A stretch of 44,866 nt of DNA from Octopus bimaculoides (lineage: Eukaryota). Positions 1,341 through 42,560 of the stretch are shown here, piece after piece. The notes beneath the pieces are model-generated. The model was given only the letters and a program-made list of their open reading frames with translations. It did no database searches and was not told the origin of the DNA. Position 1 is the first letter of the stretch. Each line of letters starts with the position of its first letter. The stretch lies in the NCBI RefSeq assembly GCF_001194135.2, contig NC_068982.1, positions 88,572,132-88,616,997 on the forward strand, in the 5' to 3' direction. The translations under genes and the position numbers were made by a program.

Positions 1341-2470
1341 CAACCAGCGTTGTTATTTCTGTCCACACATCAGTGTAATATGTCGAAGAGCGATAATTTC
1401 CGGTTTTCGTCATGCTATGCAGATGGAATGCAAAGGTTATCCACTTTTAAACAGACGACCAGATTATTAAAGTTATCTTCAAATCAAGACAGAACTGAAT
1501 ACAGTAAGACTAACCAATCAACCTCATTCTGAATTCACGCTGCTGCCAGATTATATTAGTCGTGAATTACACCACATTTTAATGTGCAAGTAGTTATACA
1601 AGCATAACTACATTCAGATTAACCTTGTTATCTGTTTCTCTTGGCTATATAAATAGTATAACATCTGTGAAAGGATTAAATTTTCTGTTCAAAGGAATGA
1701 TTAGAAAAAAGAACCGGGCATACAACCTCTCTCCCGCAGAAAAATAAACGAAATTATTGTACACAAAGAAAACATTCCAGATTTACGGTGGGGGATTTTT
1801 GAGTTTCATACCCTTTTTAAGATATTAAGGGATTCTGGGAATGGAAACACTAACCGGGAAAAGTATGACTGCACAGGAACAAATGACATATAGTCTGTTA
1901 TTGACTTCCAGATGATGCTTACATCAATGAAAAATAAAAAGTAATAGGCTAGATTCCAATACCTGGCCCATACGATGCAATTTTGTGCGACTGCTCAACC
2001 AAAGAAGTTCAAAGATATTCCGGAAGTAGTTGGAGTTTAAAGGGAATTGCATGGACGCATTGTATCATTTCTCTCTTTAAGATGACATTGAGGTATATAT
2101 AGCTTCTATTTCTAGAAGTTCAAGTGATCATGAAGAGTCGCTTATTACTATTGCGCTCGCTAATCGAAACATCGCTTCTATAGCTAAGAGAACTAAGGGT
2201 GGTTTTCACCGAGGAATCGAACGTATCGTCTTCGAGAAAAAGTAACAACACACTGAACAAAATAGTCTGAGTTTAAGTCCAAAGACACTTGTCGCTAACG
2301 CTAGGAGCCACATCTTTTTTAGATATAAACCCAGATCATTGTTCCAAAAGAAGAAATATAAATTAGTGAAGATATTGGTCATGTCATAAGCTGTCGATAA
2401 ACGAAGTTACGAAGTTGAATTTACATAGTGGATATAGTCATGTTAAAATTTCAATACTTTAGTACTGTGT

Positions 2471-2497
2471 ATGCGCGCGTGAGTGTGTGTGTGTGGG

Positions 2498-2531
<34 letters not shown>
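2471..2531. repeat. (GT)n microsatellite
   Basis: Directly visible. Confidence 0.95.
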
Positions 2532-2533
<2 letters not shown>

Positions 2534-2830
2534 CAAGGGCTGGACAAAATAATAGAAACACCTAGCATCACAGCATCATAATTTTGAAATATCTATAAAA
2601 CCGTCAAAAGCTTGTTTATTTTTATGTTTTTTTAAATTTATTATTAGTGTTACTTAATATGTTTTGCTAAAATTGCGGTTGGCGCTGCGTCTAACACGAC
2701 CCATTGTATGGTTGACACCCGAATGAATATAGGTGTAAGGGACATATTGTATGTAAATAAAAGGGGCTGCAATGGGAGATGGCAACGGGAAAGCGAATTG
2801 TTCAAATGTTGCAGAGGGCGAAGGTCTGAC
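2534..2830 (+). mobile_element. Tc1/mariner-like left-end fragment
   Basis: TA followed by CAAGGGCTGGACAAAATAATAGAAACACC, a Tc1-type TIR start, at the end of a (GT)n/TA run. No matching right TIR found. Confidence 0.55.
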
Positions 2831-2899
2831 ATAGAATTGCTAGTATGGCTGTAGAATAAGTAACATAAACTGAGCCTATGCAGTCACATAAGAATATAT

Positions 2900-3078
2900 A
2901 GTAATGAATGACTGGAAAAAATAAGACGTAATGGCTTACCGTGTGGTCGATTGGGGTAATTGGGAGAAACTGCTTTGTTGATGCAGTCTTCGGGTTTGTT
3001 GTTATTATACCGAAATGGTACCCATCATCACCATTTACAAAGTGCCGTGGATACTGGAGCGCATTGCAGGATGTAGTG
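2900..3078 (-). mobile_element. Helitron RepHel fragment (pre-Rep linker region)
   Basis: Minus-strand translation (LHP)..CNALQYPRHFVNGDDGYHFGIITTNPKT resembles the Helitron motif H.SYDALQYPLLF..GEDGYH. Confidence 0.7.
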
Positions 3079-3082
3079 ATAC

Positions 3083-3850
3083 CTACAAAACCTCTTGCTT
3101 ATCAATATTTTTTGTTTTCCCTTATGGAACAAATGCAAATAGATTTTGTCTGCTTCTCTCTCTAGAGCAGCCAACAGTTAATTGCTCGTGTGAGAAGCAT
3201 GGTCCTACCAAGTGAAGTTCTACCACAGAACATTTTTGACCCTGGGATTTATTGATAGACATTGCAAAGCTGATACGAATAGGAAATTGCACTCTTTTGA
3301 ATGGAAAAGTAATTTCTGCTTCCAATGGAATGAGAGGAATTCTGGGTATGAAAATATCCTCTCCTTTTCCACATCCAGAGAGAATGCTAATAACATGAGG
3401 CATCATCTTCTTTACCACCAGGCATGTCCTATTACAGAGTGTTAATGGATCGAAATTCCTCATTACTGGAGTTTCCACTTTAAGTTGCAATTTGTGGGGA
3501 GGTAGTCCTGGAGTCTCTAATGAATTGAGAAACTCTGCTGGATAATTTACCACCTCTTCTGGAGCTGGGTTTGTGAGGACTTCCAGGAAGGTACTGAAGC
3601 AGCAGCTCATTAATTTTACCTACAGTGCTGTTTTCTGTAGCCAGTATTGCTCTTTCACACAGCCATTTGGAATTGTGAAAATTTTTTGACCAATGGATGT
3701 AAGGGAGACAATCAGTTTCTGAAAGTTACTTCGCCAAGAGATACCTTCCTTCTCCACATAACCCAGGAAATGGTGTTTTCTGCTCCTAGAGGGCCTGCTA
3801 CGCGTTATGTCAAACATTTTAAGAGGCCAAAACCAAATCTGGAACATAAG
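3083..3850 (-). pseudogene. Helitron PIF1-like helicase C-terminal remnant
   Basis: ORF 3122-3610 contains YPAEFLNSLETPGLPPHKLQLKV, LCNRT.LVVKKM, GKGEDIFIPRIPLIP, FKRVQFPIRISFAMSINKSQGQ and CFSHEQL.VGCSR. A frameshifted tail KTKNIDKQEVL* ends at 3083; the upstream piece ..QYWLQKTAL matches the 'WL.ERAIL' region. Confidence 0.95.
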
Positions 3851-3914
3851 TAATGTATGTTTGCAGGTTGGAGAAAATCAGTTGTGAACTTCAGAAGTTA
3901 TGCTGAATTACACG

Positions 3915-3916
<2 letters not shown>

Positions 3917-3957
<41 letters not shown>

Positions 3958-3967
3958 NNNNNNNNNN

Positions 3968-4005
<38 letters not shown>
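3917..4005. repeat. (AC)n microsatellite with 10-N gap
   Basis: Directly visible; Ns at 3958-3967. Confidence 0.95.
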
Positions 4006-4007
<2 letters not shown>

Positions 4008-5700
4008 ATTAATCAATCTATTTGCTCGTGTGGATATCACTATATCCTTGTATGCACTTCACCATTTCTACTGGCCGGTGTTTTCTGAACTTCAGTTTGT
4101 AAGATCCGAACGCTGTTTGTTTCACAGATGCTAAGACAGGATTATTTCTTAGCTCATCTTGGTATTATACCATGTCTGAGATTTAAAAAAATCTTTTCGT
4201 ATGAAATTGTTTTACGTTAATGGAAGTAAATTGTTCTTTTGGTTACATTTTATGATTTATGTGTTTAGTAACTTCAAGTCAGTATGTTTTGTTGACTTTT
4301 AATTATGTTTTCTAGTTCTTTAGGTGGTAATGTCTGTTTTGATTCTCATTTAATCTAATTACTTGATAGGTTTTTTACAGCTGTAGGTCTGTCACGGTTT
4401 ATTTAATTTGATTTATTTTGGTGCCACGTGGGATGATTTATGTTGTTTACGCTGAAAGATTAATTTTTCGGAATGGTGGTATGTTATATTCTGGTCATAT
4501 TTTCCATATTTAAGAGTAGTATATTTGGTAACTTGTTTAATTCTTTCATAAGTTTATTAATTTGAGTTTGCTACATTTATTTTGTTTCCGCTTAATAGTT
4601 CATTAGGTGTCAATGTCCGTTTTGGCATACCTTTATTTTACTTCATTTATGTTTAATAGAGACATTGACGTTACGGTCTATTCGTTTTGATTCTGTTATC
4701 GTTCATTAAGTAGCAATGTCACCCGCACACCCAACGTTGTTTGCTTAGTAAGCTTAAGCAGGTGTCAAAACAGGAAACATATTGAGCTTATGCTTGGCCT
4801 CTCAAGCAACATTTATACTTTTGGTGCTGTTGACACTATCATATTGAATGGTATTGTGCACATATCGAAACTATAATGATTTCCGATAAACTGCTGATGA
4901 TGAAATGTCTAAAATTTTTTCGTGTTTTACTTTTTTTTGTTATTGTACATGTGTTTCTTTGTAATCTTCATGTACCTTATATCCTCATCGTTTCAATGTC
5001 GTCCTTTTTAGTGATATTGGTTCTTGTCGGGTTCTTCTGTTGTTTTAGGCGGAACTGATACAAGATCTTAGTTTAGTCCGGAAGTTAATTAATTACAGAG
5101 TACTACTAACAATCATCCTTTGTCGATTATGCATTGCTTGTAATGTCTTAATATGCCTTAATTTGTGGAGATTTCAAAAAGTGCTTTTAAGGTTAGTGAT
5201 TGTATGCATTCACGTACTTACATGCATGCGCACGTTTTAACATTTACAATATGTATGTCGTGTTTGTTTTCGGGAATTAATCTATTGGATTGTAAAGCTT
5301 TAATTAAGCAATGTAATTAAAGAATGATCTCATAATGTCACTCTATGCAACACTAAATTTGATCCTAGTCTGTAACAGTGTTTTCGAAAGATGTTTTCTA
5401 AGATAGTACACTGTTAATTTTTTAAAAGACTAAGAAAAAGAGGAAATTTAAATCACATATCTCTGCATCTGAACCAGAGACCTCCAGATAAAACTAATAA
5501 CTGAGAAATCTCTTCTAAAGACAAGCAGCGTCAGTTTGGGGTCTCAAACCAGGGGTTATATTATGTCACTCCTGTTTCGTTTTCAGCGTACGTAAAACTT
5601 AAGCCGTCTTAGAAATAATTGTTTTTAACTTTTTCCTATAGATAATAATTTCTAACAGGGTGTTAGAATGGAAATTTAAAGAAGAGAGAACAATAAACTG

Positions 5701-5790
5701 AAACGACTTTTTCAGTCTCAAAGGATGAAGGGTAAAGTTGACCTCGGCGGGATTCGAAATCAGAACGTAATGAGCCGGAATAAATACTGG
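5701..5790 (-). mobile_element. SINE family A, partial
   Basis: AAGGATGAAGGGTAAAGTTGACCTCGGCGGGATTCGAAATCAGAACGTAA is the reverse complement of the family core. Confidence 0.75.
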
Positions 5791-6474
5791 ATTTTATTTT
5801 TCAAGCTGCAATGAGAACCCTTCTCATTAGAAAATACAAGTGTATGTCAAAGTTACAACTGAAGATGAAGAGAGTAGAGAAGAAATCTATAGTCAACGCA
5901 TATCCCGTAAATGATATGTCGTAACAAAGAATGAGTTTATTTAATTTATACCCAGCAATTCAGCTAAGCTACTTCCTTGATTTTGTTACTTATAATGATT
6001 TGATATAAAAACAATAAATTTAATTTAGATATTAAATTCAATTAAGTATAGCCTGATGTTATTCAAGACTTCTACTATTCTTCTGTTTTCGTACAACACA
6101 CAAATGATATAATAAAGGAAAATTCCATATACCTAGTAAATACGAATAATTTTGAGCTATTTACATAAACACTGAAGAGGACTGAAAAACAATATATTGA
6201 TAAAAATTAATTATATTTGCAATATGTATTATGATAAACAATGGAGATTAAGTAACGGCAATTTGAAATACAGTCTCAGATAAAAAAAAAAAACAAACGC
6301 ACCACGGCATTACAGCAAATGTGGTTTATTATATAATATGACATTATGTTTCAGAATGATAATAGCCGGTATGTTTGTGGTTTCGAGGAAGGACCTTCTT
6401 CAAACAATGCATGAATGTATTTGAAGACTGCAATTATCGGAGAGAGTGAAAAAAAAAACAAAAAAAAAACAATA

Positions 6475-6673
6475 GGTTTAAAACTTGGCACAAGTGCAGC
6501 AATTTTAAAGGGGAGATACAAGCGATGAGATCGTCCCCGGTGCTCAACTGGTACTTTGTCAATCTGAAAAGGATGAAGGAAAACGTTCTCGGCGATATTC
6601 AATCTCAGAACGTAAAGAGACGGAAGAGATGACGCTAAGCATTTTGTCTGGCGCTCTAACGATTCAACCAGCT
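6475..6673 (-). mobile_element. SINE family A
   Basis: CCCCGGTGCTCAACTGGTACT...AAGGATGAAGG...CTCAGAACGTAAAG...CTAAGCATTTTGTCTGGCGCTCTAACGATTCAACCAGCT. Confidence 0.8.
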
Positions 6674-6869
6674 TAGTAATAGTAGTAGTGGTAGTTGTGG
6701 TGGTAATAGTAGTAGTAGCAGTAGTTCCTTTTATTAGCCACAGAGGCCTAGATGAGGGGAATATCACAAAAACAAACAACAATTTGTGTTGGGATTTACA
6801 TATAAGTTGGCGAGTAAGAAATAGAAAAGAGGGTAAAATGCGATAATATATATATATATATATATAATG

Positions 6870-7530
6870 AATGTGAAATCATGGATGATACAGCCCTCCT
6901 TATACAGGAAAAAATACTGTTAGAGCTAAGCAAGGGGCCTCACAGATCCAGGATTACCCTGACCACCAAAGACACGAGCCCTCTTCCAATTGTTACTCTT
7001 TAGACTATAGGCTCTTGTTTAAAGTGGGGCCATTCACTCTAACCGTTCTTCTCACAGTTGGCCATCTTTTCACAAGTTCAATGGAAAGTAACACTTTTCT
7101 CTCCACTTTCACTTTCCCTTCTATGAAGAACGTAAGATATGCGGATGAGAACTTAAGCGAAGAGGAAAGTGTCTTTCCACAATCCTCTCAGCCTTGTTCA
7201 CCACACAACCTCTTTCGCCATGGTCAGTAGATAATGGAACACCGGTGTTTGGGTAATCCTCACTATAGATTCTACTGACACATGGATTCATCCAATACGC
7301 GATAACAGCTGTTCGACATTATTCCGCAAGTCAGAAAATACTGGGACAGTGTACGAATGCATGTAAAAAGGTTCGCGCTCTGCGCAAATCTCGGTTAGTC
7401 CCTCCTGACAGCGCTTCCATATCTGCCCACCAGAAACTACCAAGTAAGCATTCTTAGAAAAGGTACTGATCCTGTCGTCCGCTTTAATGACGCAACTAGA
7501 AAAGCAATTGACCACCTCATCTCTGAATGC
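6870..7530 (-). mobile_element. L1/Tx1-like LINE, ORF2 C-terminus and 3' UTR (degenerate)
   Basis: Frameshifted minus-strand translation RYGSAVRRD*PR..., VEQLLSRIG*IHVSVESIVRI, MAKEVVW*TRLRGL, KVERKVL...KRW...VNGPTLNKSL* (stop at 7005-7007). Homologous to the two fragments at 21.2-22.8 kb. Confidence 0.75.
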
Positions 7531-7544
7531 ATCATGTTAAGCTC

Positions 7545-8095
7545 AAATGAGCCTACTAATCACCACTGTCGACTTGGTCAGAATTTGCAATGGATCATAT
7601 ACTGTGGGATTGGTCTCCTTTTTTATAAGAACCGATGGGAACATAAATCTGCTAAGTTAAAAGAAAACAAAGATATCACCATTGTTTGGGACTTTACAAC
7701 TGAAACTAATCGAGCTACTCAGGTCAATAGACCTGGTATTGTGGTAAAAATGATGTTGACAAACATGCCTGCTCACAGATATGTAAATTTAAACAAGCAG
7801 CAACACATCTTTAAAATACATTTGAATAGTTAAGTAAATACAAAGATCTTGAAATAGAAGTTTCAAAAAGCTATTATCTAAGAACAAAAACTCTGTCAGT
7901 GATCATTAGGAGCAATCTTAAACCCTATGGCCAAATATCAAAATATCAAAGTATCAGAATATCAGAACTACAAAAAAATGTTCTCCTGGGTCTCCTTTCC
8001 CTACAATATGTTATTGCTTATAAATAAAACTCAGTAAAACATCGAAATTGCTGTTATCTGAGGTCTCTGAGGTGAGACTTGGAATAGCTTATATA
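7545..8095 (+). mobile_element. R4/Dong-like LINE 3' end (restriction-like endonuclease region)
   Basis: HHCRLGQNLQW, WEHKS..KENKDITIVWDF, NRPGIVVK, TCLLTDM, SKYKDLEIEVSK across frames. Confidence 0.8.
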
Positions 8096-8540: not shown

Positions 8541-8772
8541 CTTAATAATAATGATGATAATAATAAAAATAAGCTAGAAATAAATAGTAAAGCACAGGAA
8601 ATCAACAACACACATAGACAACAAAAATGCTCTGTGGATAAATAGGGAAAAGAAAAGGAAGTACAAAACAGCACTACAAATATGGCCCACCATCACAGGC
8701 CAAGAAATCACTGACACACTGTGGAGTACCAGCATGTGGAGAACTCCAGGGATAAACAAGGTCCCCAACTTC

Positions 8773-9945
8773 GGGTCTTTACCTTTTGAACAGCACATCG
8801 AGAAATTATTTTTTTGCAATTAAACACTTTCAAACTTCGGACACTGGTAGAATGTGTCATATAAAACGTCATTTACTCTAAGTGCTGTTAAGAAAAGTTT
8901 GTATTTCCAAAGTTATTTCGTGTTAAAGTTGTCGTATTTCGGTAATTTCAACCGACCAATGACGTGTATTCAGCTGAATAAAATTACTGCTGTTGTTTGT
9001 CAACAACAACTTCTGGTGGTGTATATTTCGTTTGTAACTGTTATTTATGACGTATTTAATCTCACTTACATTTGTATGAATAAACGAGTGTATCTGAAGC
9101 ATGTTTACTTCATGACACCACCACAATCGTTCGTGCATTTCCACTGGTTTTAGTTTTTTTTTCCTGTTTTTCAGCTACTATTTTCGGAAAGACATTTTTG
9201 CCCCCTTGCCCCTACCAATCCAATTTCTTCATTTTTCACATTTTTTCGTAACTCTAACCCTAAAATCCCAATCCTAACCCTAACCCTAAAACCCCAACCC
9301 TAACCCTAACGCTAACCCTAAAACCTTAACCTTAAGCCTAACCCTAAAACCCCAACCCTAACTCTAACTCTAAAACCCTGACCCTAATCCTAAAACCCTA
9401 ACCCTAACCCTAAAACCCTAACCCTAACCCTAACTCTAACCCTAACTCTAAAACCCTATCCCTAACCCAAAAACCCTAACCCTGACCCTAAAACGCTAAC
9501 ATTAACCCTAACCCTAAAACCGTAACCCTAACTCTAAAACCCTATCCCTAACCCTAAAACCTAACCCTGACCCTAAAACCCTAAGCCTAACCCTGACTCT
9601 GAAACCCGAACCCCTACCATAACCCTGAAACCCTAAAGCTAAAACCAGTACAAACGCACGAACGATGTCCTAAATAACAGTGACAAACGAAATATACACC
9701 GCCGATAGTTGTTGTTGATAAACAACAGCAGTAATTTTATTCAGCTGAATACATGTCATTGATTGGTCGAAATTACCGAAATACGACAACTTTAACACTA
9801 AATAACTTTGAAAATATAAACTTTTCTCAACAGCACTAAGACTAAAAGATGTTTTATATGACACATTCTACTAGTGTACGAAGTTTGAAAGTGTTTAGTT
9901 ACAAAAAATTAATCTCTCGATGTGCCATTCAAAGGGAAAAGATCC
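8773..9945. mobile_element. Non-autonomous TIR DNA transposon (Merlin-like MITE) carrying a telomeric-type repeat array
   Basis: Inverted arms of ~280 bp (8773-~9052 vs ~9665-9945), termini GGGTC/GATCC, flanked by 8-bp TSD CCAACTTC (8765-8772)/CCAGCTTC (9946-9953), 7/8 match. No transposase ORF. Confidence 0.85.
9250..9646 (-). repeat. Interstitial telomeric-like array, degenerate (TTAGGG)n with TTTTAGGG variants
   Basis: Plus strand reads CCCTAA/CCCTAAAA repeats; 20-bp units at 9371, 9391 and 9411. Confidence 0.95.
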
Positions 9946-10487
9946 CCAGCTTCTGTCTGAAACACATCAACTGTACCCACACCCATATAGCGGCAGCATT
10001 TAATTTATTAATAAGCCAACCAGAATCAACACCAAACTAGATGCTGAAAGGACAAAGCACACTAATTCCCCAAAATAAATTCACCTTGCAACTACAAAAT
10101 TATAGGCCAATAACATGTCTATCAACCCTCACATCAGTCATCTATAATACCTGACTCAACATAACACGTTATATTTTCTATCGGTAATTAAAAGAGCAGA
10201 GTAAAGCAGTTCTCTTCAAAACCTACCATCACTCTCATTAACCATAGTAGCAGTAACTCGCCCTGCTCTAATTACATATTCACTCCATTCAACTGGGCCG
10301 TAAATGAGTGACCTTGCAACGGACTTGTGCCGGTTCTGTTAGAATGTGATCTCGTTCGCTTACATGTCATGGAAATTGGGGAACCTAGGACTCAAGATAA
10401 TAATTCTTAGGTGATGATAACGAAGATAATGTGGATGTTTAACATGTTTATGCATTTTTGGCTCAATTTTTAATATTGAAGTAACGT

Positions 10488-14280: not shown

Positions 14281-14359
<79 letters not shown>
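13856..14359 (+). mobile_element. R4/Dong-like LINE 3' end with (AAT)n tail
   Basis: EANRPDIVIRNHQQKTCLLIDGSIATEDVSLKETEKLSKYKDL, ..IQKIALLGIAHFLHKALSI*, then 3' UTR and (AAT)n at 14283-14359. Confidence 0.9.
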
Positions 14360-14479: not shown

Positions 14480-15860
14480 TACCAGGCAGTGGCTCTCATA
14501 GCTTCTGATCTTAACTTATTGGAATTGTTATCATGTATATTGTTTTGTCTTGGTATAAATGATGGGCTACAGCAAATATTCTGCTCAATATCAGATTTGC
14601 TTCTCAGCTGTTTCACCTTAATCAGTTGAGCATGTCCCTTAGTTACTGACGATATGTGCATCTCTGATCACGAGCAGAAGTTTCAATTTGCTTAATCAAG
14701 TCTCTAGTCGATAATGCGATCCCTGCTAGGGACTATATCTTGTCTCTCTTTAGGTAGATTATTTGGCACTTCTTGAGTCCAAATTCCATTCTAATATCAA
14801 TTCTAAAACAATGGACCGTGTTCACCAAGGAACTCACTTGGGTCTCTTCTTTGCCACATAGTTTCAAATTATCCATGAAGAGGAGGTAGTTGATCGTTAG
14901 GGATTTTTCCTTCAGTTGGTACCCCAGGTTCATTTTCCTGAGTACCAAGGTCAGGGGTATCACGCAGAGAACGGAAAGCAACAGAGATAGGCTGTCATCC
15001 TGGACAATCCCTCTTCTGATAACCAGGGTGCCCAAGCTTTTTCCGTAAGATGTCAGTTCAGCTTTCCATCCCACCATACTTCTCTTCAGGAAATGCGTTG
15101 CATTCCTCGCAATTTCAAACAGATCTAAGCACTCAATGATCCGCGAATGTGGAATCATATCATAAGCGATAGTCAATCCAGGTCATTTCTACATTTGTTC
15201 TCCTTCGTTTACAATTTTGTCTATGAATAATTGATCTTTCGTGCATCTCCTAGAACCTTTTTGGTCCGTCGGTATTATATCGTTCTCATCACAAAATTTA
15301 TACAGTTCATCTGCAGTTCCTCCTGACAGTAACTTCCACATTAACAGGAGGTAAGGAACTTGTCTGTAAGTGTCAGTAGCATTTACCGTTGATGCAACCT
15401 TCAAGCACAATACCATTCGTCTTTTTGTCAATCAGCCCGGGATATCCATTAGATTTCCATTAAATTGCTCTGCAATCAATTTATAGCAACTAGTGAATTT
15501 TTTATCCAAAATCTCTGCATACCATCAGGTCCTGCTGCTGTCCAATTGCTTGTCTTTTTACTCATATTTCTGATACTGTCTTCTGTGAAGTCCTCTTGCT
15601 GGGGGTAAGAAGTTGTTTGCTTCAGGCTGCAGAGCCTTTCAGCTGTAGTATTATGTTGTAATTGCTTACTCCATATCTTACCCCAGAAAAGTCGACTTTC
15701 ATCAGCATCAGGGACCAAACGTTCGCGTTTGTTATCTTCATTAATCTTTTTTGGTTGGTTCTTAACAATTTGTTTTAGTGGTTTTGCTTAATCCGTTGTT
15801 CAAACTTTAGGTCTACACCATTTTTCATCACATTTACTTGATAGTTCCGGGTCAGTCAGA
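14480..15860 (-). mobile_element. R4/Dong-like LINE, RT-containing fragment
   Basis: PDADESRLFWGKIW, SNWTAAGPDGMQRFWIK, TDQKGSRRCTKDQLFIDK, AYDMIPHS, IRRGIVQDDSLS, LLFMDNLKL, MEFGLKKC. Confidence 0.9.
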
Positions 15861-17340
15861 TCTAATCTTGGGCAGCAAAGATAAAGCCTTCACTCTCTGC
15901 CTTTAGCTCTGAGCTCCGTAGTCACTGATGGGTGTGTTTCTGATCTACATCAACCTGTTTGCTAGGGGACACATATTTGCCATGTCCTCAGCTATCAGTC
16001 AATTTTTCAAACGCATTTTGCTTTGCTATTGATTTCATATTCTCTGCAACTGCAGTTGCTGCATTTCCATCATGCTGTTCAACCTGGGTATTAAGCATAA
16101 TCTCACTTGAAACTATTTTGTTCTCTTTCATAACAGAAAGTAGCTTCTTACGACTTGCATTGTTTTCAACGGGCATTCAGTCGTTAGATGTTACAAAATA
16201 TTTTGCCAGTTCAAGTGTAATGGTTTTGTAGGAGATTTCAGATAGGATCAATCCTCGACATCCTTGATGTCTGAGTAGGTAAAGACGATCTGCATTTGCC
16301 TTTGGGTGGTGCATCTTATTGCAAGTCGGCAGCTTACTGATTTTTGTGTCAATCTTCCTTATTTGGCTCATATTCCAGTTCAACACGTTGAAACTGTAAA
16401 TAACAACTGCAAATGCTACGACATTTATAGCTAACACCTTGTTACGTGCATTTAACTCGGATTTCGGACTGCTCGAACTTTCCTTTAAAACTCTTTCCTA
16501 GTCTTCTCTTTCATACTTGCATGCTGAATACCAGAGTCCCCATCTATTCCAAAGTATTTGTAAGTTTGTTCCTGCTCGAGCTCTTTTATGACTGTGTCGA
16601 CATCCAACTCCACTGAATGTGAGGTCTTCAGTTTCCCTTTCTGGAAAGTGACCTTGGCACATTTATCAAGACCAAATTCCATCCCGATGTCATCACTGAA
16701 TGCTTTCACAGTACGTAGTAGTCCTTCAAGCCCATTATCGTGTTTGCCATAGAGTTTTAAGTCATCCATATAAAATAGGTGACTTATTTTCTTGTCGCCA
16801 ATTTTATATCCATACCCTGTTCTGTTAAGTTCACTTGTAAGGGGTATTAGGGCTATGTAGAAAATTAAAGGTGAAAGTGAGTCACCGTGGAAAATGCCTC
16901 AGTTGATATCAATATTTTTGTGGTCAGTACTCCATTAGTGTGGTATAGCTGAAGATTCGTATTCGACATTGGTATGTGCTCAAGGAAGTTTGATATCGCA
17001 GGAGAAAATTTGAATATATCCAGCGGTATGCTGTCGAAAGCCTTTTTATAATCAATCCATGCAGAACAGATTTCTGGATTTGTTATAACAGTTCTCAAGG
17101 ATCATGTGATTGATAAAGAGTTGGTCTTTGCATCTATATGAGCCTCGCTGGCACCCCTTTTTTTCAATGGGAAAAATATCGTTCTGTTCTATAATTTTGT
17201 ATGTTTTTTCCACGAGGATGGACATTGCAAATTTATACGTGGTAGATAGACCTGTTATGGGTCTATAGTTTTGTGGAAGTTAGGTTTCATTATTCTTCGG
17301 GAGTAGGTAATACCCCTTAGTAACCAATCAGGTGGTATGA
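15861..17340 (-). mobile_element. R4/Dong-like LINE, second RT-containing fragment
   Basis: PDWLLRGITY..QNYRPITGLST, SAWIDYKKAFDSIP, MDDLKLYGK, DDIGMEFGLDKCAK, MHHPKANADRLYL, VDQKHTHQ*LRSSELKAESEGFIFAAQD. Confidence 0.9.
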
Positions 17341-18375: not shown

Positions 18376-18376
18376 T

Positions 18377-18476
18377 TCTTCTTCTTCTTCTTCTTCTTCT
18401 TCTTCTTCTTCTTCTTCTTCTTCTTCTTCTTCTTCTTCTTCTTCTTCTTCTTCTTCTTCTTCTTCTTCTTCTTCTT
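18377..18476. repeat. (TTC)n microsatellite
   Basis: Directly visible, running into the gap. Confidence 0.95.
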
Positions 18477-18621
18477 NNNNNNNNNNNNNNNNNNNNNNNN
18501 NNNNNNNNNNNNNNNNNNNNNNNNNNNNNNNNNNNNNNNNNNNNNNNNNNNNNNNNNNNNNNNNNNNNNNNNNNNNNNNNNNNNNNNNNNNNNNNNNNNN
18601 NNNNNNNNNNNNNNNNNNNNN
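18477..18621. other. Assembly gap (N)
   Basis: Run of N. Confidence 1.
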
Positions 18622-18622
18622 N

Positions 18623-25221: not shown

Positions 25222-26234
25222 TACAACTATCCCTGCATCTCCCAAGTTAAGTAAAAACTTTTTAAAGCGTTTATTCATCAAAATATATTCCAACATATTC
25301 TATTATTTGTTGATACCGTTGTGCCAGAAGCTCAAATCCACGCTTATATCATTTGGATGGTTTTGAAACAAAACCCCTTGCACACGTCTTCAACCTCAAC
25401 CAAGTTCGGAACAAATGGTAATCTGATGGTGCAAGATGAATGGTGGAAGAGCGGTTTTTTTTAATTATTAGATACATGCGCACTTGTAGCCTATAAAGGC
25501 TAGCGTTCACAGCATAAACATTTGCTACATAACCAAAGTGCAACACACTCGAAATTTCATCAAGCATACATGACGTTCTGTTCAAACCGCGCTTACATAC
25601 AACAGGATCTTCTGTTCAATTCGCGCTTGTTTGACAAGAGATTCTGAAGTCTAGTCACGTATTTATTTCTCTTATTAAGATTAAGAAAATAATCACATTT
25701 TAGTCCCCAGTTACAAATCATGGCCAAAAAATGTGCATCTCGAGGAATTGCCAGCCTTTCGTTGGTCATTGATCAATTAATGAGGAACTTCTCGACGCCA
25801 CCTGTTCAAAACGCCGATCTTACAGGTGTGTCGATTGATAGTACTACTTTGTGAAGAACCACGTTCTGCCGACAGTGTACGAGTGTTTGTACTTGGGTGA
25901 TGTTCAAAAACTTCAAGCAATGCCTCATCTTCCACAGCAGAAGGTCCCTCTGACTTTGCTTATCTTCGTGGTTAGTGTCACCTTTCTTTAAATATCTGAA
26001 CCAGTTTTGTGACACACGTTCGTAGACATTTCCTGGGCCTTCCACATCATTAATGTTTTTGGCCGCTACACTACCACTCGGTCCTTTACTCATCAGATAG
26101 CATAACAAGGCTCTCATTGTAATTTTTTCACCACTCATTATCAAAGTAGTAAAGTAAATAATAAACAATTAACATTTATATGTTATATGTGAAAGTAAAT
26201 AATAAAGAATTCAGCAACGGTTGGACAAGTTGTA
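25222..26234 (-). mobile_element. Decayed mariner (DD34D-type) transposon
   Basis: ORF 25806-26168 gives an HTH region (AAKNINDVEGPGNVYERVSQNWF..KKGDTNHED); VTGD remnant; HLAPSDYHLFR at the 3' end. The ends share only a weak TACAACT..TCC inverted match, so boundaries are approximate. Confidence 0.85.
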
Positions 26235-26445: not shown

Positions 26446-26731
26446 NNNNNNNNNNNNNNNNNNNNNNNNNNNNNNNNNNNNNNNNNNNNNNNNNNNNNNN
26501 NNNNNNNNNNNNNNNNNNNNNNNNNNNNNNNNNNNNNNNNNNNNNNNNNNNNNNNNNNNNNNNNNNNNNNNNNNNNNNNNNNNNNNNNNNNNNNNNNNNN
26601 NNNNNNNNNNNNNNNNNNNNNNNNNNNNNNNNNNNNNNNNNNNNNNNNNNNNNNNNNNNNNNNNNNNNNNNNNNNNNNNNNNNNNNNNNNNNNNNNNNNN
26701 NNNNNNNNNNNNNNNNNNNNNNNNNNNNNNN
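26446..26731. other. Assembly gap (N) after (AC)n
   Basis: Run of N preceded by (AC)n at 26418-26445. Confidence 1.
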
Positions 26732-27316: not shown

Positions 27317-27732
27317 ATATATATATATATATATATATAGGGGGTGAGAGTCGGGCGTTCTAATAAATTTGGAAGTATTTACAAATGTAGGTGGTTGAAA
27401 ATATCTGGCAAAAATCAAGTAAACTATTTCAGCGAAGTATTTAGCACTTTGAGTTCATTCATGGCAATATCGCTTCTTACTAAAACACATTTCTTCAATG
27501 CTGTTCTAGAGTCCTCTGAAATTGGTCGACTTGCTACGTCGCTGACACCATCCTTCCATCTGTTCTCCCAATACGTCACTAAATGCTTGGTGATTCAATA
27601 ATCTGTTTCACTTTTTTTTTATAGTATTATTTTTAAATTGTTTTCAAAACTGTTCACAATATTTAATGAGCATTTGGATTTTTTCAATTAGCATAGTGTG
27701 TTCTCTTGGCTGAACAATTTTGTTTTTATTTT

Positions 27733-27875
<143 letters not shown>

Positions 27876-31141: not shown

Positions 31142-31979
31142 NNNNNNNNNNNNNNNNNNNNNNNNNNNNNNNNNNNNNNNNNNNNNNNNNNNNNNNNNNN
31201 NNNNNNNNNNNNNNNNNNNNNNNNNNNNNNNNNNNNNNNNNNNNNNNNNNNNNNNNNNNNNNNNNNNNNNNNNNNNNNNNNNNNNNNNNNNNNNNNNNNN
31301 NNNNNNNNNNNNNNNNNNNNNNNNNNNNNNNNNNNNNNNNNNNNNNNNNNNNNNNNNNNNNNNNNNNNNNNNNNNNNNNNNNNNNNNNNNNNNNNNNNNN
31401 NNNNNNNNNNNNNNNNNNNNNNNNNNNNNNNNNNNNNNNNNNNNNNNNNNNNNNNNNNNNNNNNNNNNNNNNNNNNNNNNNNNNNNNNNNNNNNNNNNNN
31501 NNNNNNNNNNNNNNNNNNNNNNNNNNNNNNNNNNNNNNNNNNNNNNNNNNNNNNNNNNNNNNNNNNNNNNNNNNNNNNNNNNNNNNNNNNNNNNNNNNNN
31601 NNNNNNNNNNNNNNNNNNNNNNNNNNNNNNNNNNNNNNNNNNNNNNNNNNNNNNNNNNNNNNNNNNNNNNNNNNNNNNNNNNNNNNNNNNNNNNNNNNNN
31701 NNNNNNNNNNNNNNNNNNNNNNNNNNNNNNNNNNNNNNNNNNNNNNNNNNNNNNNNNNNNNNNNNNNNNNNNNNNNNNNNNNNNNNNNNNNNNNNNNNNN
31801 NNNNNNNNNNNNNNNNNNNNNNNNNNNNNNNNNNNNNNNNNNNNNNNNNNNNNNNNNNNNNNNNNNNNNNNNNNNNNNNNNNNNNNNNNNNNNNNNNNNN
31901 NNNNNNNNNNNNNNNNNNNNNNNNNNNNNNNNNNNNNNNNNNNNNNNNNNNNNNNNNNNNNNNNNNNNNNNNNNNNNNN
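31142..31979. other. Assembly gap (N)
   Basis: Run of N; probably hides the GIY-YIG end of the Penelope-like element. Confidence 1.
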
Positions 31980-33250
31980 GCATCGGCTATCATTGCATTT
32001 GGATACAGTGAATGCTTGATTTTTGTTGCTGAGGTCAAACCTTGCCTTTGTTAATAGTTTTTTCAAGTTTTTAGGTTGTCTCTTACTGAGAGTTATATTT
32101 TGATCTGTAATGATATTTCTCAATTCCTTACTTTGTGCGAGGATCGGTAAGTTCGCTTTGGTGATATTAAAGATGTTCTGGTGGCATGGATTTTGTGTCA
32201 CTATAAATGGAATGATCTTTTCCTGTTTGTCTCTTCTTTGTGGTGTCCTCAGTTGTTGTATGGGTATTTTCGAAGCCCGCTGAATACCATTTTCTATGAG
32301 TAGTGATGGGTATTTTTGTTTTAGCAGAAATTCTTTCAGTTCCATCAGGCGCTGATTTCTGGTTTCTATATCCTCTACAATAGTACATATTCTCCTGGCT
32401 AGGCAGTATGGAATGTTGCGTTTTGTATGGGGTGGATGGCACGATTTAAAGTTCAAGTATTGGTGTGTGTCTGTGGGCTTGTAATATATATCTGTGGTAA
32501 TGACGGTGTCCCTTTTAGCTACCATTATATCTAGAAATGGTAATTTGCTACTGCTCATCTCCTTTGTAAATTGGATGGATGGGTGTAGGTTGTTCAGGAG
32601 GGTGTTGAATTCTTCCACAGTGCTTTGAGGTTTGGTCCAGATTATAAAGCAATCGTCCAGGTATCTCTTCCATGCTTTTTCTATAAGCTTCCTAAATTCG
32701 GTGTTATATCTCTCTTCTATTTCCTGGTAGAGTCTTTGTTCAAAGTAACCCATCACCAAGTTCGCATAAACTGGAGCAAACCTCGTTCCCATAGCCGTGC
32801 CTTTAATTTGGATATAGTTCTTTCCATTGAAGAAGAAAGTATTATTTTCCAGGATAAGTCTCACTGATTCTAGTATAAATGTCACCGTGAATCTGTTGGG
32901 AATTGCTTCCCTGTGTTTGTCTACCCAGTATTCCACCACCTTTATTCCTAAATCATGTGGGATATTTGTGTATAGGCTTACTACATCAAAGCTCAGTAGG
33001 ATTGAATTTGTTTCAGTGGTTTTGGGAAGATGGGATAAAAAATTGATGTCATCCCGAATGAAGCTGGGTATGTATGTACATAGTGGCTTTAAAAGAATGT
33101 CGATGAAATTGCTTAGACGGTGAGTAGGGCATACTGGGCCAGCTATAATTGGTATAAGTTTTAAATCTTTTGGATGTAGCACTTTTATGTATTCACTTCC
33201 TTGTTCTTTTACTGCCTGTTGAATATCTTCTGACTTATGTATTTTGGGTG
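31980..33250 (-). mobile_element. Penelope-like retroelement, RT ORF (5'-truncated, 3' end in gap)
   Basis: Uninterrupted frame of ~420 codons: PKIHK, PIIAGPVCPTHRLS, SFDVVSLYTNIPH, GTAMGTRFAPVYANL, WKRYLDDCF, LPFLDIMV, IYYKPTDTHQYL, HPPHTKRNIPY, ending ..CNDSRC at the gap. Confidence 0.95.
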
Positions 33251-34199
33251 TGTTTATTTTGGCATAATCACCCTCTCGATAAACAACAAAGCTTTCAACA
33301 AATATTCTTCGGTATTTTATTCAATGTACGCTACTCACTCTGCATATTATTTACAACCGATCACTTCTGCGCACCCTTTTATGGACATTATATGAACATT
33401 GTTAATCTGAAATGTAATGGTCCATATATTCTCGTTGCTCTTCAGCTCTAAGCTATCCTATGATATATTCTATTTAATGATTTCTCTACTATGCGCAAAA
33501 GATTATATGATAGCGTATTGATGGCACATTATATCCACTTTAATTGAGAATCAACTGATCAGCATGGCCACCTAAATATTAATATCTGGTATATTATTCT
33601 TTCATCTTGTTTAAACCCTGTCGTAAGAAATTCTTACTTCTCTGTACTTACTTTGTGGCGTTCTTATCCACAAACTGCATCTTATTTCTTTTTGACGACG
33701 TTAATGCCTCTTCGGTCCAAATTTTACAACCTGTTTACAGAAATATGCCTGTTTGATCCTAATTCCGTGCAATCAGTTCTGCATTTTCCATAAATAGTAA
33801 AATATTGATTTTATTATTTTTTCCTTTCCTAACATATCCATCTTTCCTGTAAGCAATATTCATGTTAATGATATCATACACAAAATATTAATAATGATAT
33901 TATATATATATATATTGATTTTAATAATGCTTACATCTTCAAATTTTTGTTATTTCCTTTTCACTCGATTCATAATTTTTCGTAACGTATTCACGTATTT
34001 AAGCTTACAGTATTGGCATAATCATTCTGTAACAAATTTTCAAATAAATTACACGTTGAACATGAAGCTATTGATTGTCACTCTTTGTACTTTTATGTAT
34101 TTTGTGAATAACATTTGAACTGATGCTATTAATCCTAGTATTTTTATGTATTCATATATAACTGTTTGTGTTTTTATATTTGCTTGTGCAAAGGTATGG

Positions 34200-35032: not shown

Positions 35033-35197
<165 letters not shown>

Positions 35198-38927: not shown

Positions 38928-39403
38928 NNNNNNNNNNNNNNNNNNNNNNNNNNNNNNNNNNNNNNNNNNNNNNNNNNNNNNNNNNNNNNNNNNNNNNNNN
39001 NNNNNNNNNNNNNNNNNNNNNNNNNNNNNNNNNNNNNNNNNNNNNNNNNNNNNNNNNNNNNNNNNNNNNNNNNNNNNNNNNNNNNNNNNNNNNNNNNNNN
39101 NNNNNNNNNNNNNNNNNNNNNNNNNNNNNNNNNNNNNNNNNNNNNNNNNNNNNNNNNNNNNNNNNNNNNNNNNNNNNNNNNNNNNNNNNNNNNNNNNNNN
39201 NNNNNNNNNNNNNNNNNNNNNNNNNNNNNNNNNNNNNNNNNNNNNNNNNNNNNNNNNNNNNNNNNNNNNNNNNNNNNNNNNNNNNNNNNNNNNNNNNNNN
39301 NNNNNNNNNNNNNNNNNNNNNNNNNNNNNNNNNNNNNNNNNNNNNNNNNNNNNNNNNNNNNNNNNNNNNNNNNNNNNNNNNNNNNNNNNNNNNNNNNNNN
39401 NNN
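38928..39403. other. Assembly gap (N)
   Basis: Run of N. Confidence 1.
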
Positions 39404-41832: not shown

Positions 41833-42560
41833 AAGGCAACTAAATGGGATCTATTTTAAAACGGGGGCCACATTTTTCATTAATGTTTTACGTAGTGTTT
41901 TTGGTACGGAAAGACTTTCAAACTTCGTATACTTATCTATTTTGTGTTATAGAACAGAAAAATATTTTTGTATTCGAATTTATTTCATGTAAAAAATTGT
42001 CTTATTTCGATAATTTCAACCAATCACTGACAAGTATTCAGTTGTTTACATTTACTCCTTTGGCTGATTAAGCGATGTAAAGCGTATTTAATCTCCATAC
42101 CTTCGTTTTATTTGCTTTTTTCATTTTAAATTTGCTTTAACCCTAACCCTAACCCTAGGGTTAGGGTTAATTGTTTCAGAATCGTTTGTTTATGTAGTCG
42201 GCACTTAATGTATATCGGCTGATTGTTTGAAATTACAGAAATACGACAACTTTAACATGGAATAACTTATGGATTTCTTTTTTTTTTAAGAAGACTAAGA
42301 GAAAAAAATGTTTTATATGACACATTCTACCAGTGTTCCAAGTTTCAAAGTGTTTCGTTAATGAAAAATGTGGCCCCCGTTTTAAAAAAGATCCACTAAA
42401 TGCCAGAATAGTAAGCCCACCTGACAAAAATGCTTAGCGGCATTTGGTCCAGCTCTATGTTTTGAACTCAAACATAGTCAACTTTGCCGAATTCTTGATT
42501 GTTGAAATCGACTTACAATCTCGTCACAAAATTTCAGGCCTTGTGTACTATAAAAGAAAA
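41833..42560 (+). mobile_element. SINE family A split by the Merlin-like element (pieces 41833-41846 and 42395-42560)
   Basis: Removing 41847-42394 and one TSD gives AAGGCAACTAAATGCCAGAATAGTAAGC..AAAATGCTTAGCGGCATTT, matching the family head AAGGCGGCGAGCTGGCAGAATCGTTAGC..AAATGCTTAGCGG. Confidence 0.7.
41847..42394. mobile_element. Non-autonomous TIR DNA transposon (Merlin-like MITE) with an internal telomeric palindrome
   Basis: 37-bp terminal IR GGATCT(A/T)TTTTAAAACGGGGGCCACATTTTTCATTAA with 1 mismatch, plus longer degenerate arms; perfect 8-bp TSD ACTAAATG (41839-41846, 42395-42402); TAACCC x3-TA-GGGTTA x2 at 42138-42169. Confidence 0.9.

Follow-up and report, generated by a model that had tools for sequence, protein, structure and literature searches.

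A telomere-type repeat tract probably carried inside a family of long-inverted-repeat DNA transposons

A 44.9-kb stretch of contig NC_068982.1 of Octopus bimaculoides (referred to below, at its full length, as the window; GC 34%) contains two related elements with long inverted arms and a telomere-type repeat tract between them: copy 1 at positions 8773-9945, and copy 2, a diverged relative at 41847-42394 that was found by BLAST of the copy 1 arms against the window. These are probably two insertions of one non-autonomous, hairpin-shaped family of cut-and-paste transposons with long terminal inverted repeats (TIRs), in which the telomere-type tract occupies a fixed internal position. That a mobile element carries telomeric repeats is well supported by the two sequences; that the family belongs to the Merlin superfamily is plausible but unproven, a judgement that we hold to be evenly balanced.

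Copy 1 had been described in a sequence-only reading as an element with ~280-bp inverted arms, GG-type termini, an 8-bp target-site duplication (TSD), ~400 bp of internal CCCTAA-type array and no transposase, and each of these particulars is borne out. The features of copy 1 and of its insertion site are the following.

8765-8772, no strand: left TSD, CCAACTTC, a 7/8 match to 9946-9953.
8773-9051, + strand: left inverted arm (TIR), first bases GGGTCTTTACC; 279 nt, 89%; nhmmer E=1.8e-65.
9052-9125, + strand: left-internal segment without a counterpart in the right arm; by alignment its start, GACGTATTTAATCTC, is common to the left-internal segment of copy 2.
9126-9157, + strand: inner continuation of the left arm, pairing with 9635-9666; 32 nt, 88%.
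9158-9248, + strand: T-rich spacer passing into very degenerate CCCTAA-like units; the repeat family of the array extends back to 9192.
9249-9636, + strand: tandem array of telomere type whose C-strand (CCCTAA) lies on +; periods 6, 20 and 26.
9637-9666, - strand: inner continuation of the right arm, pairing with the left inner continuation.
9667-9945, - strand: right inverted arm (TIR), reverse complement beginning GGATCTTTTCC; nhmmer E=8.7e-65.
9946-9953, no strand: right TSD, CCAGCTTC, 7/8 against the left TSD.
8650-10150, + strand: host of the insertion, a decayed reverse-transcriptase (RT) fragment of a long interspersed nuclear element (LINE), split by copy 1; from the frame of the joined flanks.

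The arms at 8773-9051 and 9667-9945 are complementary over 279 nt at 89% (90.3% in a global alignment), and their pairing restarts, between 9126-9157 and 9635-9666, past a 74-bp segment that belongs to the left side only. The element begins with GGGTC and ends with GATCC (reverse complement GGATC). Its flanking octamers, CCAACTTC and CCAGCTTC, agree at 7/8 positions, for which the chance probability is 3.8e-4. The open reading frames (ORFs) of copy 1 are all short and yielded no Pfam domain, so that no protein domain is encoded by the element; nor did Rfam, hammerhead ribozymes included, find a known RNA family or ribozyme in it. An exact cut-and-paste insertion predicts that the LINE frame should be unbroken once the element is taken out, and excision of copy 1 in silico agrees: the flanks, joined minus one TSD, give a continuous RT frame in which ...WRTPGINKVPNF runs across the junction into CLKH...GQSTLIPQNK...NYRPITCL. 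Within the window there is no paralogous empty site for the element. The 10% divergence of the copy 1 arms argues against a palindromic assembly artefact.

Copy 2 is shorter and is laid out as follows.

41839-41846, no strand: left TSD, ACTAAATG; 8/8, chance 1.5e-5.
41847-42070, + strand: left arm, first bases GGATCTATTTTAAAACGGGGGCCACA; nhmmer E=2.2e-46.
42071-42136, + strand: left-internal segment, holding GCGTATTTAATCTCC in common with copy 1 (alignment).
42137-42170, no strand: telomeric core, TTAACCCTAACCCTAACCCTAGGGTTAGGGTTAA, with three C-strand units followed by two G-strand units; a 26-nt perfect palindrome.
42171-42200, no strand: short right-internal spacer between the telomeric core and the right arm.
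42201-42394, - strand: right arm, reverse complement beginning GGATCTTTTTTAAAACGGGGGCCACA; nhmmer E=4.5e-52.
42395-42402, no strand: right TSD, ACTAAATG, a perfect match to the left TSD.

The terminal 37 nt of copy 2, starting GGATCT, are 97% complementary within arms of ~195-225 nt, the ends read GGATC...GATCC as the family termini do, and the perfect TSD is not extendable in either direction. The predicted fold of copy 2 is a single long hairpin (z=-10.7), in which the telomeric palindrome forms a separate stem at the apex.

The kinship of the two copies is evident in their ends, their arms and their layout. All four arm ends are GGGTC or GGATC; arm identity is 82-90% within a copy and 77-85% between copies along the whole length of the arm; and a four-arm profile run with nhmmer over the window matches the four arms alone. 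The window was also scanned blind for GG[AG]TC...GA[TC]CC pairs flanked by an 8-bp duplication, with at most one mismatch tolerated in the duplication, and this returned exactly 2 instances, copies 1 and 2, with 0.07 expected in shuffled sequence. Both copies present the same order of parts (left arm, left-internal segment beginning G(A/C)GTATTTAATCTC, telomeric tract, right arm), and in both the tract stands not at the geometric centre but after the left-internal segment, against the right arm. Tandem dimers of CCCTAA/TTAGGG occur in the window inside copies 1 and 2 only. (The inner spacers of copies 1 and 2 also resemble each other over 9-10 nt, AATCGTT..., a likeness dismissed as probably due to chance.) Copies 1 and 2 thus appear to be two subfamilies of one family, and since both have the telomeric tract at an equivalent internal position, the core would belong to the family and not be a one-off. 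The proposal that copy 1 is a mobile interstitial telomeric sequence (ITS) finds its support in the same place: copy 2, with its perfect TSD, also carries the tract where copy 1 does. Two ways in which that proposal might have failed had been foreseen, namely that other copies would lack telomeric repeats and that TSD length would vary; the one other copy has the repeats, and the TSD is 8 bp in both.

The tract of copy 1 has a history of its own. Tandem Repeats Finder resolves 9249-9636 (388 bp) into a period of 6 with the consensus TAACCC (59.5 copies, 70% matches) and also into longer ones of 20 and 26. On the G strand it comprises ~65-75 units; in a count of ~75, ~27 are perfect TTAGGG and 8-9 are TTTTAGGG, the others being mostly single-substitution variants (TCAGGG, ATAGGG, TTGGGG, TTAGAG). 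The higher-order unit on that strand is TTTTAGGG-TTAGGG-TTAGGG(-TTAGGG), 20 or 26 bp long, and the absence or presence of the extra TTAGGG accounts for the two longer periods. Strings of variants recur as 124-nt blocks, and the repeats have one orientation only. The array is a degenerate satellite grown in situ by slippage and by unequal exchange of already-degenerate units or block duplication; it is not clean (TTAGGG)n and not a telomerase product. Its G strand contains 42 GGG runs, and formation of G-quadruplexes would be possible in principle. Because the window is a gapped short-read scaffold, the length of the array is provisional.

The sequence-only reading had also placed the element close to Merlin, and of that assignment the terminal GG, the 8-bp TSD and the TIR length fit, while a transposase partner and a match to any Merlin sequence are missing. 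The hallmarks of the superfamily are a TIR of 24-462 bp, a conserved 5'-GG and a TSD of 8 or 9 bp (PMC8101967), and many of its families contain tandem repeats in their interior (S1 Table, PMC8101967). In the present family 5'-GG stands at all four ends, each copy is flanked by an 8-bp TSD (7/8 in copy 1, 8/8 in copy 2), and the TIRs, at 279 nt in copy 1 and ~195-225 nt in copy 2, lie within the 24-462 bp range that was used (Repbase entries extend to ~1 kb). The same yardstick was applied to control Merlins: a profile built from four mollusc Merlin transposases (PMC8101967 supplement) retrieved 4246 relatives, from which 12 loci (L046-L057) were fetched. One of these, L052, holds an autonomous Merlin with 40-nt TIRs starting GGCAATCT and the TSD CCAATCTC/CCAACCTC; in L053, L055 and L056 the TIRs measure ~120 bp and start with GGAACTTC, and all three TSDs are perfect and 8 bp long. 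Thus the control Merlins (L052, L053-L056) begin with GG, their TSD is 8 bp in 4/4 cases, and the combination of GG with an 8-bp TSD is reproduced on real mollusc-type Merlins.

These loci also furnish observations in their own right. The L052 element (1615-7884; ENA ERZ25084522) encodes a 440-aa transposase, and its TSD resembles CCAACTTC/CCAGCTTC of copy 1, which may point to some preference in target sites, if it is not a coincidence. L053 (3341-5879), L054, L055 and L056 (ENA ERZ26052287) represent a young, multi-copy autonomous Merlin family of ~2.5 kb with TIRs starting GGAACTTCTTCGC; the copies are 97-99% identical, and the family looks recently active. In L047 (5935-5974) and L048 (5929-5974), (TAGATC)6-7 directly abuts the 5' side of a Merlin transposase ORF of gastropod type; GATCTA is contained both in the repeat unit and in the GGATCTA at the TIR start of copy 2, probably by coincidence.

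Among described elements, non-autonomous Merlins (the Repbase Merlin-N/MERLINx_CB type; Feschotte 2004, to the extent that PMC8101967 relays it) share the 5'-GG, the 8-bp TSD, a TIR length between tens and hundreds of bp and the lack of an ORF, and internal tandem repeats are common in them too (PMC8101967). They differ in that the family has no sequence similarity to the Merlins examined, and the survey reports the telomeric hexamer in no Merlin family (PMC8101967). Merlin-1_Aplcal of Aplysia californica (Repbase) shares a mollusc host; its period-6 array (39.5 copies, with longer periods of higher order) lies downstream of where its transposase domain is placed, and it resembles in position and periodicity the copy 1 array that abuts the right arm with periods of 6, 20 and 26. 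The gastropod-type Merlin loci that were fetched have (TAGATC)n or no hexamer array.

A number of points weigh against the reading set out so far. The family is seen in two copies only, both of them in the window, and the window has five N-gaps bordered by microsatellites ((CA)n, (TTC)n/(ATA)n, (AC)n and (TA)n). [quoted passage not shown] The Merlin loci fetched have neither arm similarity nor telomeric hexamers in 12/12 cases, the hexamer beside the Merlin ORF in L047 and L048 being TAGATC, not TTAGGG; Merlin-1_Aplcal is autonomous, and its hexamer may be non-telomeric. In bivalves few DDE superfamilies are rarer than Merlin, and hAT and Mutator-like elements (MULEs) are commoner: curated families number 133 for hAT, 39 for MULE and 3 for Merlin (PMC10294476). 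GG termini and an 8-bp TSD form, moreover, a weak classifier, into which some MULEs also fit. It is accordingly possible, if to our minds rather doubtful, that the same transposon, carrying its telomeric core just as well, belongs to another superfamily: to the MULEs most likely, as had been suggested before, and less likely to an atypical hAT, P, Zisupton or Novosib group. MULEs have long TIRs, G-rich termini and a TSD usually of 9-11 bp, sometimes of 8, and TIRs of ~200-300 bp are classic for them; the long TIRs and GG/GGG ends of the family, among them the GGG at the left end of copy 1, are compatible with this, as is the failure to find either a Merlin transposase in the window or Merlin TIR similarity in the 12 loci. 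A TSD of exactly 8 bp in both copies is, however, at the short extreme for a MULE, and every real Merlin examined has GG and 8 bp. No MULE transposase occurs among the window ORFs. hAT and P, set aside earlier, are likewise disfavoured. The TSD of hAT elements is 8 bp, often nTnnnnAn, and their termini are YARNG, whereas the copies here carry GGATC/GGGTC ends, and position 2 is C and position 7 is T in either TSD; P elements have CA... ends.

Other explanations leave the element in doubt, or the tract as part of it. The tract might not be cargo of the family but have been acquired separately by each copy, through breakage of a palindromic centre and repair by telomerase. Long inverted repeats form hairpins or cruciforms (to which the fold of copy 2 corresponds) and are break-prone, and the accepted view traces short vertebrate ITS to repair by telomerase; the two tracts are, besides, very unlike in length and structure, and the single orientation in copy 1 fits one-ended addition. 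The origins of ITS are reviewed in PMC6410037. We nevertheless think independent healing unlikely because the order in copy 2 is the opposite of what two-ended healing must yield: the product would be L-(TTAGGG)n(CCCTAA)m-R, which inversion leaves unaltered, whereas copy 2 reads L-(CCCTAA)3(TTAGGG)2-R. The tract also takes an equal off-centre place in both copies, the copy 1 array is a higher-order degenerate satellite with TTTTAGGG variants and block duplications, and two independent events befalling the sole two members of a family, with no telomeric repeats elsewhere in the window, would be an improbable coincidence. What the copies share with telomerase-inserted short ITS (PMC6410037) is telomere-type repeats that are interstitial, far from chromosome ends; the classical examples are near-perfect, unidirectional, in unique DNA and free of TIRs and TSDs, in contrast to the tracts here, which are embedded in a transposon and are degenerate in copy 1 and palindromic in copy 2. 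A retroelement origin would make each element two short elements placed head to head, mimicking a TIR transposon: retrozymes, or Penelope-like elements (PLEs) of the endonuclease-deficient Athena/Coprina type, the 3' ends of which bear telomeric repeats in reverse complement. As PMC4522978 summarises them from Gladyshev and Arkhipova, such PLEs are RT-encoding retroelements at chromosome ends, primed at G-overhangs and carrying short 3' repeats of the host telomere; their polarity, element-(C-strand repeat), is that of each half of copy 2 read inward from its terminus (PMC4522978), and a PLE is present in the same window. In that summary they are without TIRs and without a fixed TSD, and here exact GG-ended TIRs accompany precise 8-bp duplications at two unrelated sites; there is no RT or other ORF domain and no hammerhead ribozyme or Rfam family, copy 1 has a single repeat orientation, and both insertions are interstitial, one of them within a LINE. 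We regard this origin as very improbable. More improbable still is that nothing here was ever mobile, and that the structures are relics of chromosome fusion or rearrangement, which ITS may mark (PMC6410037), or chimeric palindromes created in the assembly of a short-read scaffold with five N-gaps. Two loci have homologous arms and each its own 8-bp duplication; the arms are 10-18% diverged, and artefactual palindromes are perfect; a telomere-telomere fusion would orient the repeats the other way round from copy 2; and the copy 1 flanks make up one continuous LINE ORF.

Copies 1 and 2 have the structure of a non-autonomous element that is mobilised in trans and duplicates 8 bp of its target. 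A DDE transposase encoded elsewhere would recognise the GGATC... ends and excise the element, and reinsertion at target cuts staggered by 8 bp would create the 8-bp duplications; the leading candidate for this enzyme would be of Merlin type, on even terms with all else. Each transposition would carry the tract along and plant an interstitial telomeric sequence. Once in place the tract would behave as an internal microsatellite or satellite, standing at 5 units in palindromic arrangement in copy 2 and expanding in copy 1 to ~70 degenerate units, with slippage and block duplication giving rise to the 20/26-bp higher-order unit. The tract could descend from hexamers arrayed next to an autonomous parent's 3' TIR, or it could mark the turn-around point of snap-back (fold-back) synthesis from a single transposon end. 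On the latter scheme, a strand with a CCCTAA tract at its end, adjoining one transposon end, would fold and copy itself, thereby generating the C-then-G palindrome and, in one step, a two-armed element competent for transposition. Both ideas are speculative, as are binding of telomere proteins, a G-quadruplex function and telomere seeding by the element. It would be a surprise if the tract proved to be an obligatory, conserved part of the family, whether as the snap-back turn-around or as a predicted recruiter of telomere-binding proteins or telomerase, and not passive cargo.

The family has some distant parallels. In the ciliates, the TBE1 elements of Oxytricha and Tel-1 of Tetrahymena have telomeric repeats at the element termini and are tied to programmed DNA elimination. 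They are alike in being of cut-and-paste type and in an association with the host telomeric repeat that results in internal telomeric sequences in germline chromosomes; here, in contrast, the repeats are central, the host is a metazoan and the ends are ordinary TIRs. Elements like miniature inverted-repeat transposable elements and foldback elements (the satellite-linked HindIII and BIV160 elements of bivalves, Tetris of Drosophila virilis; PMC6947457, PMC4079207) are likewise short and non-autonomous, with inverted ends and a variable internal array that is able to seed satellites, and the internal-array architecture is a recurring theme in bivalve elements. Their arrays differ, being element-specific satellites on the scale of tens to hundreds of bp and not a telomeric hexamer. 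Many of the bivalve HindIII/BIV160-type examples are now deemed to be related to Helentrons, without TIR and TSD. In the literature that was searched for TIR transposons or miniature elements with telomeric repeats, no such family is described. Internal tandem repeats in transposons are known, and so are telomere-associated mobile elements, in other forms; the new part would be a TIR element with a telomeric core.

Searches for further copies were uniformly negative. The arm motif TTGTCKTATTTCNRTAATTTC, conserved in all four arms, had 31 matches in metagenome contigs, 11 in GTDB genome contigs and 6 in viral contigs, all of them seed-only chance matches, and a second arm 21-mer had 0 matches in viral contigs. 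A spurious ORF of the arm, used as a protein query against mechanically called ORFs, retrieved no candidate copies, and a 22-kb Mytilus edulis locus contains no copy of the element. The eukaryotic loci that were fetched have no transposable-element family in common with the window at the DNA level, except for ~68% identity over the PLE.

The remainder of the window is rich in transposons. Its PLE is represented by an intact-looking piece of ORF with an RVT_1 domain (31980-33320, - strand) that adjoins an N-gap; its database relatives carry GIY-YIG, come almost all from bivalves and are 55-72% identical. The closest named ones are bivalve throughout (Mytilus edulis, Pinctada, Saccostrea), an affinity that by itself would make a bivalve host probable. 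At 3125-3619 (- strand) an ORF has the 2B domain of a Pif1 helicase (E=1.2e-9) and is probably a fragment of a Helitron/Helentron helicase. A mariner-type HTH_48 domain is found at 25809-26168 (- strand; E=7e-5), a DDE_3 match (E=2.5e-8) lies among the window ORFs, and RVT_1 fragments at 14736-15182 and 16488-16898 (both - strand) probably belong to one decayed retroelement. Trinucleotide microsatellites of unusual length, perfect or nearly so and in several cases contiguous, occupy 14283-14359, 18376-18476, 27726-27868 and 35033-35195, with the units (AAT)25, (TTC)33, (TTA)35+(TAG)13 and (TCT)27+(TTA)27. The window is a short-read scaffold with its gaps falling in simple repeats, and mechanical ORF lists run through these gaps, producing false long ORFs in all six frames. 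The N runs are:

3958-3967
18477-18622
26446-26731
31142-31979
38928-39403

ITSs often lie near transposons (PMC6410037), a circumstance that supports a transposon route to such sequences indirectly. A tract inside a transposon, with intact ends and TSDs at two independent sites, supports that route directly, by structure, in an animal, and a connection of telomeric DNA with the rare Merlin superfamily becomes open to test. Telomere fluorescence in situ hybridization (FISH) in the mussel Limnoperna fortunei gives dispersed interstitial signals, and there is no long assembled ITS array that explains them (PMC12818792). Should the family be abundant, transposons, and not relics of chromosome fusion, may be the source of interstitial telomere-FISH signals in bivalves, and the finding would bear on the automated calling of telomeres and ITSs in mollusc assemblies as well as on the study of satellite seeding from repeats internal to transposons. 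Were the tract obligatory, the family would spread functional sites for telomere proteins and G-quadruplexes, or latent seeds of new telomeres, throughout the genome, and this would account for dispersed FISH signals in mussels without long ITS arrays (PMC12818792).

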